A stretch of 64,000 nucleotides of DNA. Source: Diplonema japonicum (lineage: Eukaryota > Protista > Euglenozoa: Diplonemea). The notes beneath the pieces are model-generated. The model was not told the DNA's origin and made no database searches. It was given only the letters and a program-made list of their open reading frames with translations. The stretch is from assembly GCA_964019335.1 (NCBI GenBank), contig OZ025719.1:310001-374000 (forward strand). Reading direction: 5' to 3'. A program made the position numbers and the translations under genes. Of this stretch, positions 12,685 to 18,315 are shown in pieces; position 1 is the stretch's first letter; each line of letters opens with the position of its first letter.

Positions 12685-13719
12685 ATGCCCGATTCATGGC
12701 AAGGCATCAAGGACCTTTCGTACCAAGCAGGCGACATCCCAAACGGAAAATGGAGAGACAGGGTCAGATGCTTCGCTGAAGCAACCTGGGTAGCCAGGTG
12801 GGTGTTCGTCCTTTCTTGTTCCGCAGTCTCAATCGCGTGTATTGTCGAAATATCAAAGGCGCAGACAAGCGGGCATGAAACAATTCAAAAAACTGTGAAT
12901 GGCAAACCATGGAGGCTGCCGCCATACGGAGGCCCGAACAACGATTTTGCACAACTGAAATTTTACGGAGGCACCCCTGCTCTGAGCGTACCGTTTTGGA
13001 ACATCACCGTCAACCACTTTTCACAAGGGGCTGCCCTCTTCGCAGCCGCCATAACAGAGTGTGAGCAAGGCTCATTTTTCATAGCTGCAATATTTGCCCA
13101 CGATCGAAAAACAATACATGTAACAACAGGTGAGGTGGTCAATGTAGGCAAAGCGTCTTTATCCATACCCCTTCAGGACGAGGCAAATACACTGTGGTTT
13201 GAAGGTAAAACCCTTCGCCTGACGATGAAGGACAGAAATGGTTTGTTGTTGTCCGTTGATTTCGATGTTAAGCAGAGCATTGGCCTTGTTATGTCTCATT
13301 TGTACACAGACCCCAATGTGAATTTTTCATCGATGGTGTCAGAAAGTGTCTCTGTTGTGTTTAAAGATAATGGGGATTCTGTTCAAATAGGTTCAAGTAA
13401 CGTGTACTCCTTGCCTTACAGGGCAGCCGCTTATTATTTGGCTGAGAGCCGGTCTGTTCTCACCTTATTGTTTAAAACAGTGCCGCTTGTACTGGCGTCG
13501 GTAGAGGTCGTGCCGTCTGCTAGGTTTCTCGGGGTGAGGTCGTTTGGTGTGGTGTTGCCCTCTTCTGTGTGCGCTCCTTTGGGTGTTACGATGCCGGGTG
13601 GTTATTTGTTCCATGATCCTGACGGGCACTACCCAAGCCCCTTCCCGCAACCGTGGGGCCTTCGTGACCCGGTGGCGACGTACTCTCCCGGTATGCTGTG
13701 CGTGCGCGAGGTTGAATAA
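12685..13719 (+). CDS. Hypothetical protein with N-terminal transmembrane segment
   Basis: 344-aa ORF after an A-tract; hydrophobic stretch WVFVLSCSAVSIACIV. Confidence 0.7.
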   Translation: MPDSWQGIKDLSYQAGDIPNGKWRDRVRCFAEATWVARWVFVLSCSAVSIACIVEISKAQTSGHETIQKTVNGKPWRLPPYGGPNNDFAQLKFYGGTPALSVPFWNITVNHFSQGAALFAAAITECEQGSFFIAAIFAHDRKTIHVTTGEVVNVGKASLSIPLQDEANTLWFEGKTLRLTMKDRNGLLLSVDFDVKQSIGLVMSHLYTDPNVNFSSMVSESVSVVFKDNGDSVQIGSSNVYSLPYRAAAYYLAESRSVLTLLFKTVPLVLASVEVVPSARFLGVRSFGVVLPSSVCAPLGVTMPGGYLFHDPDGHYPSPFPQPWGLRDPVATYSPGMLCVREVE

Positions 13720-13749
13720 AAAGATAGATTTATAAAAGATTATTTCCCT

Positions 13750-13785
<36 letters not shown>

Positions 13786-14103
13786 TTTTTAAATTCTATT
13801 CTCCTCTCACCATTTACCCGAACGAGAAAAGAAAAAAAAAAAAGAAATGTATGCTTATTTTTATTTTTATTTTTTTATTCGCGAAAGTTCGACAAAAAAA
13901 AAAAAAAGTCCGAGACGACCTTTTTATTTTTCTTCTTTTTTATTTTTTCGGTCTTCGAGAAAGATTTGTGTGGTCGGAGAAAGAGAAAAAAAAAAGAAGT
14001 AGAAGGCTAGGGACAAAGAGCTTTTTTCTGAGTATATTTTTTACACCGCTGTGCGACCCACCAAACACCCAAAACCAAATCAAAAAGAAGGAAGAGGACA
14101 AAA

Positions 14104-17100
14104 ATGTCGTTAAAGGAAGAGGCGCTGCTGACGGGGCACACAGACCGGGTGTGGTGTGTGTCTTGGGGAAAGTACGGGGAGCTGGCGAGTGCGTCCGGTG
14201 ACGGGGACGTCCGTGTGTGGGGGGAGGTCGATGGGAAGTGGAAATGCAAACAAGTGCTGAAGGAGCACTCAAGAACGGTGCGCAGCGTTTCATGGGCACA
14301 CGAGGGGAACATGCTGGCTTGCTCTAGGTATGCATTTCACAATGAACCCAAATAAAAAAAAAAAATAAATAAATAAATAAAAAAAAAAAAAAAGCTTCGA
14401 TGCGTCTATCAGCATCTGGCAGCGTGAGTCGCCTGACGCAGACTTCGAAATAATATCATGTCTGGAGGTATGTGTTTTTTTTTTTTTTTTTTTTTTTCTC
14501 CATTTTGCTGCTTTTCTCAAGCGGCTCGTCCACATTTAAGAAGCGTCGTTGTTGGCTTCTCCTGCCTCCCAGTCTTCCCATTAAAAAAAAAAAGATTTCT
14601 TTTTCCAAAAACAAAAAAAAAAGTCAAAACAAAAAAATAGTTTGCAACCCCCCCCCCCCCCCCCGTGTTTAAAAAAGAAACCCCCCCAAGGACACATAAT
14701 AAAAAAGAGAGGGAAAAAAAAAAAAAGAAAAAAAAAATGTCTGCTACGATCGAATCTACGGCTCCTGCGGTTGAGCCCACGAGTACCTCGAACGAACGGG
14801 ACTGGATGGACAAAATTAAGAGACCCCCTCCTGACAAGAGGAAGCAGACGGAGGACGTGACGAACACTAAAGGGATGGAGTTCACCGACTACTTCTTGAA
14901 CCGGGAGCTGCTGATGGGCGTGTACGAAAAGGGTTTTGAAAGACCGTCCCCGATCCAAGAAGAGTGCATCCCCGTTGCACTGACCGGAGCTGACATCCTC
15001 GCAAGAGCGAAGAACGGAACTGGAAAAACCGGAGCATTCTTAATCCCAGCTTTACAAAAGCTAGACACCAAGGAGAGCAGGACACAAGTAGTGGTTCTAA
15101 CCCCAACAAGAGAACTAGCACTTCAAACCGCACAGGTTGCCAAGGAGCTCGGAAAGCATCTGGAGAACGTGCAAATCATGGTTACCACAGGCGGAACATC
15201 ACTTCACGATGATATCCTTCGCCTGTACAATCCTGTTCATCTTCTGGTGGCCACCCCTGGAAGATTGGTAGATTTGGTGACTAAGAACGTAGCCAACCTA
15301 GACAAGTGCGAGCTTATTATCTTGGACGAAGCTGACAAACTTCTCTCACCCGAGTTTGCTCCCCTTGTCGATCAAACTCTAACGTTTCTTCCCAAGGCCA
15401 GGCAGGTTCTGTTGTTCAGTGCTACGTTCCCTGTTGGCGTACAGCGATTTGTTGAGAAGCACATGGAGTCACCGCATCAGGTGAACCTAATGGAGGAACT
15501 GACTTTGAAGGGGATTAGTCAGTTTTACGCTTTTGTCGATGGAAAGCAGAAGCTGCACTGTTTGAACTCGTTGTTCTCCAGGCTGCAAATCAACCAGTCT
15601 ATTATTTTCTGTAACAGCGTTAACAGGGTGGAGCTTCTCGCCAAGAAGATTACGGAACTTGGTTACTCCTGTTTTTACATCCACGCGAAAATGTTGCAGG
15701 CGCACCGCAACCGGGTTTTCCACGATTTTAGGCAGGGCGTGTGCAGGACGCTTGTTTGTTCCGATTTGTTTACCCGGGGTATTGATATACCTTCTGTCAA
15801 CGTGGTTATAAACTTCGACTTCCCACGTAACTCTGAGACATACCTTCACAGAATTGGAAGATCTGGTCGCTTCGGGCATTTGGGGCTTGCGATTAATTTC
15901 ATCACGTACGACGACAGGTTCAACCTTTACAAAATCGAGCAGGAATTGGAGACCGAGATCAAACCCATCCCCTCTGAAATCGATAAGGCGCTTTACTGTG
16001 AATAGACAGGAATTAACAAAAAAAAAAAAAAAAAAAAAAAAAAAGAAATTACACCGTAATATAAGAGTGAGAAAAAAAAAAAAGTGGGGGGAAAAAAGTG
16101 TTTTTTTTTGAAATAAAAAGAAGTAAACGGTTAGAATAGGATGGGGGGGGGGGGGGGGGGTGCCGTTATTCATAATATTATTTATGTTCTACTTTTTGCT
16201 CGATAGTTTTTTTTTTTGTTGTTACCCTTATTTTGGAATGACATAAAAAAAAATATTTTGAGGGCAATATTGAGTTAAATACCAGGATTAAAAATTCCAG
16301 ATTGGTGTTGTGCACAATGTGGTGCTATGAATACGGTAAAAGAGAAAGAAAAAAGAAAAAGAAAATAAAGAAGAAGAAAAAAAAAAAGTGTGTGTTTTTT
16401 TTTTTTTAAATCCCCCTTTTGCCCCCTCCCTTTGAACTAGCCCAACCCGAAGCCACCCCATTCTATTTTTTTTTCTCCCTTTTTTTTTATTTTTCTGTGG
16501 TGAGAGGTATATTTTTTTTAACCTTTTCATTATAGATTTTTTCCCCCCTCCCAAAAAAAAAGTTTTTTAACCTCCTCCCTGTTGTTGGTTTTTTTTTCTC
16601 ATTTTTTTTTTTAAAAAACCTTGAGCATTCCCCCCCCCCGTCCCTCCCCTCTTTTTTTTTTTCTGACTGAAATCTTTTTTAAGGCCATGGGAGTTAACGA
16701 AAAAAAAAGAAGAAAAAAAAAAAAACGACACAATGACGCCATTAAAACATTATTTCTTTAAATTTATTTCTGAGGACCTTTTTTTGGAAGAAACGGAATT
16801 CAAAAGGAAAGCTGTGCCGACTGAAGCCTATATTACTAGTACGTGCTCCTTAGAAGAACGCCTGGCTGTTGCCACTTCCCCATCTCCTCTCCCCGACCCA
16901 GGTTTATAAATGATATTCTTTTTTATTCCCACCCCCTTGATCCCCCCCCCCCCCATGCTCCTGCCTTATTTTTTATGCCATTTTCTTTCCCCCCTTGTCC
17001 CGTCTTTTAAAAAAAAAAAGGAAAACAAATTTATAATTTAAAAAACGATGCTCCGGGTACTTTCTCTCTTTTTTTTTTCTCCCCCGTTTTTTTTTTCTTA

Positions 17101-17923
17101 TTTTTATTCGTACACGCTATTCAACCCCCCCCCCCCCCCCCCCCCACATCACGCAAACTTTTGGGAAATTTCTTTTTTGGGACCAAAAATATTCTTTTTA
17201 TTTTTTTTGGGGGGGGAGGGGGCCAAGAAGAGGGGGAAAAAAAAAAGGAAAAAAAAACCACAGGGCCACGAAAACGAGGTAAAGGCAGTATCTTGGAATA
17301 TCGAAGATAAGCTATTGGCAACCTGCAGCAGAGACAAAACAGTCTGGATATGGGAAAGAGGTGAGGAGGGTTTCGACGAGGCAGAGTGTGTGGGAGTGCT
17401 GACAGGACACTCCCAAGATGTAAAATTCGTCAGGTGGATGCCCAACGAGGACAAGGTAGTGTCCTGCAGCTACGACGACACAGTGAAAATCTGGGAAAAC
17501 GTCGGCGATGACGACTGGGAGTGCACACAGACGCTGCATGGCCACAACTCCACAGTGTGGATGGCGGACTTCTCTCCTGACGGGCAGCGCATGGTGACTT
17601 GCAGTGACGATTCTAGCCTCATCATCTGGGTAAAATCCCCCGAAGGACAGTTCCTCAAAGAAGCAACTCTCGCCTCTGAGCACACCCGGACCATATATGC
17701 GGTGGCATGGTCGGAACACGGTATTCTGACCGCTTCAGGCGACGATGCCATTCGTCTCTTCACACCCACCCCTACCCCTGGGGGCCCTCCTTCCTACCCC
17801 CTTGCCCACCGCGTGCCTCACGCTCACCTGGCCGATGTGAACTGTGTCAAGTGGGGACCCCACCAACAAGCTGCGTCTTGTTCCGACGATGGGTGTATTA
17901 AGATTTGGAAGCTCGCTGAGTGA
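14104..17923 (+). CDS. CIA1: Cytosolic Fe-S assembly WD40 protein CIA1/CIAO1 (exons 14104-14327, 14395-14467, 17264-17923; 318 aa)
   Basis: [22 protein letters not shown]|[10 protein letters not shown]|[63 protein letters not shown]. Both introns are GT-AG and phase-compatible. Confidence 0.9.
14737..16005 (+). CDS. DHH1: DEAD-box RNA helicase DHH1/DDX6, nested in CIA1 intron 2
   Basis: [77 protein letters not shown]; intronless, 422 aa. Confidence 0.97.
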
Positions 17924-18060
17924 GAAAAAAGGGATCATCTAGTGTTTTTTTTTTTCTTCTTTTGTTCTTCCCCTCTTTTTTTTTCTTCTCTTCCCCCCCC
18001 CCCCCCCCCATTTCTTTTCTATTGATAAATATAAGTAAAAGGGAAAGGGAAAAGAAGGAC

Positions 18061-18315
18061 ATGGGGGTTGGTTTCGAAGCGACGCTGATGTCGCACGGGA
18101 GGAAGATCACCGATTTCGGCAAACACACCTACAACATCCCCCGGCTGCGCGTCAGCAAGGTCAGCATGAACGACGTACATGTGCCGCTGGTCAAGGCGCA
18201 CGGGATGGGCGGGGGCGGGCTGAAGAGCATAAAGCCAGGACGGCTTGACTTCGGGAGGGGCATCAACGTCGACGACCACCTGAACCGCGCATGGACCACT
18301 ATCAAGAACACATAG
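18061..18315 (+). CDS. Small hypothetical protein (84 aa)
   Basis: GC-rich coding-like island starting at ATG 18061 after a purine tract. Confidence 0.55.
   Translation: MGVGFEATLMSHGRKITDFGKHTYNIPRLRVSKVSMNDVHVPLVKAHGMGGGGLKSIKPGRLDFGRGINVDDHLNRAWTTIKNT

Follow-up and report, generated by a model that had tools for sequence, protein, structure and literature searches.

Genes that lie on the same strand inside an intron of another gene are described from Drosophila, mammals and C. elegans, where the complete guest occupies one intron, host and guest are both expressed and splicing of the host spans the guest, which normally has its own promoter. The closest working analogue of the locus considered here is the cholinergic locus, in which VAChT/unc-17 lies inside the first intron of ChAT/cha-1. 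In that locus the guest is also in sense orientation, both mRNAs derive from a common precursor through the choice of alternative 3' splice sites, and a shared 5' exon is cis-spliced to either gene. A related choice underlies the outron rule of nematodes and the PAP intron of trypanosomes, in which a 3' splice site takes an upstream donor or the spliced leader (SL) according to context, the outcome concerning one gene's own 5' end. No euglenozoan protein-coding gene nested in an intron was found reported in the searchable literature. The present analysis describes such an arrangement in Diplonema japonicum (Euglenozoa: Diplonemea), in which the gene for the DEAD-box helicase DHH1 lies within the second intron of the WD40 protein gene CIA1. 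The window analysed is a stretch of 64,000 nucleotides (nt) of the forward strand (contig OZ025719.1 of assembly GCA_964019335.1, positions 310,001 to 374,000), and all positions are counted from its first letter.

The nested arrangement of CIA1 and DHH1 is therefore familiar from animals, but its expression context is new, as no separate promoter is expected and the 5' ends are expected to come from trans-splicing. The two genes lie in a probable polycistronic unit with SL-made mRNA 5' ends, so maturation of DHH1 must cut host precursors, unlike the maturation of animal guests. Compared with the cholinergic locus, where one 5' exon serves both genes, DHH1 would take the SL and CIA1 would use an internal donor. 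Similarly, in place of the single 5' end at issue in the nematode and trypanosome cases, two genes here need opposite outcomes at two acceptors.

CIA1 and DHH1 are confirmed as a genuine same-strand host-nested gene pair in D. japonicum. The sequence and its translations place the whole coding sequence (CDS) of DHH1, which is intronless, within one CIA1 intron (Table 1). The sequence-only reading had put the DHH1 CDS inside a GT-AG intron of CIA1 in the same orientation, and all its coordinates hold. It had also claimed that CIA1 is interrupted within the motif LE/GHENEVK, and this is borne out by the exon translations and by a gapless alignment to mammalian CIAO1, in which the junction of exons 2 and 3 falls inside the most conserved block of the protein. 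The earlier gene model is refined in one respect: the 5' part of CIA1 consists of two exons with a 67-nt intron between them, and the border of exon 1 with this intron splits a serine codon (AG/C) at 14327. Some features in the table are described by reference to P0001, the transcript-derived CIA1 protein introduced below it.

Table 1. Features of the CIA1/DHH1 locus, in window coordinates; a slash marks a splice site
Feature	Position	Strand	Remarks
Probable SL acceptor AG of CIA1	14086-14087	+	16 nt before ATG, after an A-rich stretch
CIA1 exon 1	14104-14327	+	codons 1-74 plus 2 nt; start of P0001; WD40/CIAO1 matches
CIA1 intron 1	14328-14394	+	67 nt, GT..AG, poly(A) before AG; absent from P0001 and RNA contigs
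CIA1 exon 2	14395-14467	+	73 nt; contained in P0001
CIA1 intron 2, host of DHH1	14468-17263	+	2,796 nt, GAG/GTATGT ... A10GGA9CCACAG/G
Pairing tracts of intron 2 ends	14471-14518 with purine-rich 17212-17262	+	
T23 run opening the spacer	14475-14497	+	7 nt 3' of the 5' splice site
Candidate SL acceptor AG of DHH1	14726-14727	+	after A13, 9 nt before ATG
DHH1/DDX6 DEAD-box helicase CDS, intronless	14737-16005	+	422 amino acids plus stop
Non-coding 3' part of CIA1 intron 2	16006-17263	+	1,258 nt, homopolymer-rich
A27 run	16018-16044	+	12 nt 3' of the DHH1 stop codon
CIA1 exon 3	17264-17923	+	219 codons plus stop; 100% identical to P0001

Use of the long intron is evident from RNA. P0001 is a complete open reading frame (ORF) of 318 amino acids from an independent Trinity transcript in EukProt (EP01064_Diplonema_japonicum), and the joined translation of exons 1, 2 and 3 equals it residue for residue; the searches were made with single exons or with P0001, and the joined translation was compared with P0001 only. 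In addition, contigs of the RNA-type runs X8, X1 and X2 stop at 14327 and resume at 17263 with 72 letters between, an interval that corresponds to the length of exon 2 less one G, which 14467 and 17263 have in common. Run X8 is from the same strain (a contig of 1,067 nt with 0 differences), and X1 and X2 carry other labels and represent relatives of about 97% identity. The junction 14467^17264 implied by the sequence-only reading is accordingly in use, on the combined testimony of P0001 and the spliced contigs of three RNA-type runs. One X8 contig covers 14744-16006, which is DHH1, and others lie on the intron segments 16181-16334, 16427-16578 and 16735-17086; from this coverage and the context described below, we infer a separate SL-capped and polyadenylated DHH1 mRNA. 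Run X4 is DNA-like, with a contig that reads from exon 1 through 14327 into intron 1 and with coverage of every unique intron segment.

These comparisons laid Logan contigs (k = 31) on 5,001 letters, in which the repeat mask covers exon 2, the DHH1 ends and the intron borders, and contig depth cannot rank gene expression. The contigs break at each homopolymer, and none bridges exon 2 and the intron or the intron and exon 3, so contiguity of exons and intron rests on the HiFi assembly. The genome of D. japonicum YPF1604, 62.3 Mb and not yet annotated, was produced from HiFi reads plus Hi-C (PMC13598402). The missing short-read bridges leave some room for an artefact, either a misassembly or a disrupted copy of CIA1 with a working gene elsewhere, but this is extremely improbable. 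The assembly is a curated one from HiFi and Hi-C data; DNA depth in X4 is even, at about 36-40, over exon 1, DHH1 and exon 3; the RNA matches these exons at 100% identity; and no second CIA1 exon 1, CIA1 exon 3 or DHH1 occurs in the 62.5 Mb searched.

The identity of both genes is assigned from homology. P0001 shows 47% identity to mammalian CIAO1 over residues 2-315, aligning end to end without a gap at the junction, and the individual translations of exon 1 and exon 3 align to residues 14-78 and 103-333 of human CIAO1, respectively. Pfam searches detect WD40 repeats in the exon translations, whose top natural PDB matches are 3FM0 (CIAO1), 6TBL (Ciao1) and 2HES (Cia1). These matches identify the host as a predicted CIA1/CIAO1, the WD40 protein of cytosolic iron-sulphur assembly. 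The guest ORF contains the Pfam domains DEAD and Helicase_C and shares 70-83% identity with proteins named DDX6/DHH1 (K12614), and 96% with the D. ambulator protein. The exact protein is present as a complete ORF of 422 amino acids in the EukProt transcriptome collection, where it clusters with that of D. ambulator. By these similarities the guest is classed as DHH1/DDX6 rather than as eIF4A or another paralogue.

CIA1 exon 1, CIA1 exon 3 and DHH1 have one locus each in the genome (62.5 Mb in 132 contigs), and the next-best DEAD-box locus is only 42% identical to DHH1. An intact CIA1 elsewhere, which would mark this copy as disrupted, was looked for genome-wide and none was found within this assembly, which within these bounds rules out both a pseudogene and a further intact copy. 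In searches with exon 3 and P0001, the next CIA1 match after the D. japonicum protein was only about 50% identical. No CIA1 of Diplonema papillatum or D. ambulator was listed among the matches, though their DHH1 proteins match at 75-96%, and those data sets may have missed or mis-annotated CIA1. A scan of metagenome contigs found only distant CIA1 genes (at most 52% identity), and breaks between high-scoring segment pairs did not cluster at residue 99/100, a result that is uninformative on whether other eukaryotes share the intron position, given cross-matches between WD repeats.

Splicing in this species has been characterised from 10,131 supported introns, of which 98.3% are GT-AG, with a median length of 41 nt, a donor consensus of (G)/GTATG, an A-rich tract replacing the polypyrimidine tract and a CAG 3' end (Thakur et al. 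2025, PMC12621601). The same authors noted that long introns may have escaped their draft assemblies (PMC12621601). The range of 39-218 nt that the sequence-only reading gave for all other introns is in line with this median. The signals of CIA1 intron 2 (G/GTATGT and A10GGA9CCACAG) match this consensus, and by them it would be classed as a canonical U2-type intron; CIA1 intron 1 ends in the same form of poly(A) followed by AG. The length of intron 2 is about 68 times the published median and is not typical of the species. No transposon was recognised in intron 2, which has only low-complexity matches elsewhere in the genome, and no Rfam family came near threshold; its repeats are homopolymer runs only. 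Arrival of DHH1 by retroposition was considered and rejected as unsupported. The window contains nothing SL-like when up to 3 mismatches are allowed, and there is no target-site duplication, the only shared word being a low-complexity 12-mer. The A27 run was discarded as a retroposition tail, with 12 A-runs of 20 or more in the 64 kb.

The transcriptional setting of the pair is that of a gene cluster. Twenty-nine of the 37 ORFs of at least 200 amino acids in the window, including every non-overlapping one, are on the + strand, and the window is therefore a one-directional cluster with CIA1/DHH1 in its middle. The SL exon (...GCTACAGTTTCTGTACTTTATTG/GT) has 256 copies in the genome, and its reversed control has 0. 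In D. papillatum, a relative, the SL is found on essentially all mRNAs, one-directional clusters comprise up to about 100 genes, polycistronic transcription has been inferred, and introns reach 72 kb and contain transposons (Valach et al. 2023, PMC10161547). Nested cellular genes are unmentioned in the main text or supplements of that study (PMC10161547). The premise of the sequence-only reading, that mRNAs mature by SL trans-splicing and polyadenylation, is reasonable in the light of the SL exons, the one-directional cluster and the D. papillatum data, and the conflict in processing to which it pointed is real. Nothing, however, shows any of the alternatives that it put forward, namely a regulated switch, freeing of DHH1 from an excised intron and joining of the two parts of CIA1 in trans. 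As to the SL exon copies themselves, they consist of 38-39 nt followed by GT, are dispersed over contigs and have at least 3 families of downstream sequence (examples are L013-L018, such as L018:1450-1620 and 2056-2220); rather than SL RNA genes, many of them probably represent retroelements or retrocopies headed by the SL.

Spacers between genes in the window (for example 13720-14103, 17924-18061 and 1369-1793) have a recurrent grammar. T or pyrimidine runs stand just 3' of stop codons, and the next ATG is preceded within about 5-30 nt by A or purine runs with an AG. Overall, 24 T-runs of 20 or more accompany the A-runs of that length, and there are poly-C and poly-G runs of 12 to 24. The 269 nt from exon 2 to the DHH1 ATG fit this grammar exactly (GTATGTG-T23 ... 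A13-G-A9-ATG), which places DHH1 in a normal trans-splicing context. Further candidate acceptors for DHH1 lie at 14706-11, all AGs in the spacer having been listed. Likewise, the end of the stretch before CIA1 exon 3 resembles what precedes start codons in general. At the 5' end of CIA1, X8 and X2 contigs begin matching at 14087 and 14090, with 21 further unaligned letters 5', next to the probable SL acceptor. The cis acceptors of CIA1 introns 1 and 2 and this probable SL acceptor are all A-rich and followed by AG; with cis and trans acceptors alike in form, sequence alone does not separate cis from trans sites. In the upstream gene, the X8 contig ends at 13704, 15 nt before the stop of the ORF 12685-13719, and DNA-like and related-species contigs over this ORF run on to 13739; the contig end at 13704 could reflect splicing or the use of an alternative 3' end.

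The reading that we favour, at a probability of about 0.55, is that CIA1 and DHH1 share a precursor on which cis-splicing of CIA1 competes kinetically with SL trans-splicing and polyadenylation of DHH1. Both genes would be read from one long precursor. If a U2-type spliceosome joined exon 2 to exon 3 in cis, CIA1 mRNA would result and DHH1 would be lost with the lariat. If the SL were instead trans-spliced to the A-run and AG acceptor a few nt upstream of the DHH1 ATG, and polyadenylation followed the DHH1 stop codon, DHH1 mRNA would result and the CIA1 halves of that molecule would be severed. Maturation of DHH1 by trans-splicing and polyadenylation would in this way cut a CIA1 precursor. Each precursor would give one mRNA or the other, in a ratio set by kinetic competition and with no dedicated switch. 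Since intron 2 carries ordinary cis-splice signals, plain cis-splicing in competition with trans-splicing suffices.

Several points weigh against kinetic competition on a shared precursor. Among the reads, none carries an SL or poly(A) site of DHH1, whose ends are repeat-masked, and none represents a common precursor, a lariat or truncated CIA1 by-products. The outron rule of nematodes holds that a 3' splice site preceded by a 5' splice site is spliced in cis, and by this rule the exon 2 donor, about 250 nt upstream, should capture the DHH1 acceptor. Cis use of 14726-27 by that donor is predicted to yield an in-frame CIA1(1-99)-KKK-DHH1 fusion. No such fusion ORF appeared in the protein search, the database of which is without gene calls from the contigs of this species. 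Contig depth in X8, a measure unsuited to ranking, is 113 for CIA1 as against 89 and 124 for its neighbours, with 43 for DHH1; this is weakly unlike the depth of a gene that pays for DHH1. Moreover, transcription start sites in diplonemids are unmapped.

The unmapped start sites leave room for a rather unlikely alternative, in which DHH1 is transcribed from its own start site within the intron, the two genes have separate primary transcripts and there is hardly any competition between them. An own start is reported as the usual mode of nested genes in Drosophila and mammals (PMC3814207, PMC11694760). Nevertheless, DHH1 lies deep in a one-directional cluster with spacers of 100-800 nt, and in related diplonemids each such cluster is probably transcribed as a unit (PMC10161547). 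Host transcripts would in any case still cross the DHH1 processing signals, so that for them the conflict stays.

Maturation of DHH1 mRNA from the excised lariat after cis-splicing of CIA1 would give both products from one precursor, and intron segments do occur as X8 RNA contigs, at lower depth. It is nonetheless a very improbable route. Transcription reaches the DHH1 acceptor about 2.5 kb ahead of the exon 3 acceptor, which means that trans-splicing can come first, and excised lariats are normally debranched and degraded quickly.

A further way to obtain both mRNAs from one precursor would be for DHH1 to be cut out by SL trans-splicing and polyadenylation while the halves of CIA1, tethered to the polymerase or paired through the intron ends, were still joined, in effect in trans. 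Splicing can proceed despite a cut in the intron, as exon tethering and the excision of intronic microRNAs show, and in Giardia split genes are joined via paired intron halves. In keeping with this, the first 51 nt and the last 52 nt of intron 2 could form a duplex of 45 bp (-45 kcal/mol), comprising 24 U-A, 11 U-G and 10 G-C/C-G pairs, which includes UGUG/CACA beside the splice sites and comes within 3 nt of the 5' and 1 nt of the 3' splice site. The 3' end of intron 2 is the best partner of the 5' end in a comparison of about 21,000 windows across the 64 kb. The contig depth of CIA1, not below that of its neighbours, is a weak point on the same side. However, specific pairing of this kind failed the reciprocal scan and is retained only as a possibility. 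For the 3' end, the 5' end ranks only tenth, behind nine pyrimidine tracts, one of which (at 16381) lies inside the same intron. In this homopolymer-rich genome any U/C tract pairs with any A/G tract, and the duplex is probably generic complementarity of a pyrimidine tract and a purine tract. It could help, but does not in itself speak for a tether or for joining in trans, and no cut intermediates are evident from RNA. Joining of severed CIA1 halves is accordingly judged unlikely. An extended duplex of intron ends, by which the splice sites are brought together, is likewise possible in the split introns of Giardia and in the non-canonical introns of euglenids and hemistasiids (PMC12621601). 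Unlike those, CIA1 intron 2 is canonical GT-AG with generic pairing that is not statistically distinctive, and the introns of D. japonicum as a class pair weakly at their ends. It is doubtful, and slightly more so than the joining of halves itself, that one precursor yields both essential mRNAs through a hybrid of cis-splicing and genic trans-splicing, which might possibly define a class of nested loci in diplonemids.

A search for further split genes gave a number of long ORFs (354-982 codons) that run stop-free into AG/GT[AGT]TGTG and then a T-run of 13 or more, namely L120:2018-3235:-, L121:2005-3096:-, L117:2972-4033:+, L122:1988-3481:- and L123:1981-4926:-. The pattern of AG/GT[AGT]TGTG with a T-run has about double the frequency of its reversed control. 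Of the five such ORFs examined, two clearly match complete Pfam domains (an epimerase and a BMS1/Tsr1-type protein), one gave a match below threshold and two gave none. Nothing in them pointed to truncated halves, and they were rejected as further split genes. Either their products carry a poly-Phe tail or the stop codon comes from a short terminal intron.

Diplonemids rank among the most abundant eukaryotes of the sea, and they combine many conventional introns with SL trans-splicing and probable polycistrons. The cell has to tell cis from trans acceptors, and in D. japonicum both appear to be an A-rich tract followed by AG. For annotation, the locus carries a warning, as gene finders restricted to short introns would split CIA1. 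In CIA1/DHH1, two essential single-copy genes are opposed in one intron, and the ratio of CIA1 to DHH1 mRNA, together with the by-products, directly reports the choice between cis and trans acceptor. The locus is thus a natural test of splicing over a gene versus cutting the gene out.

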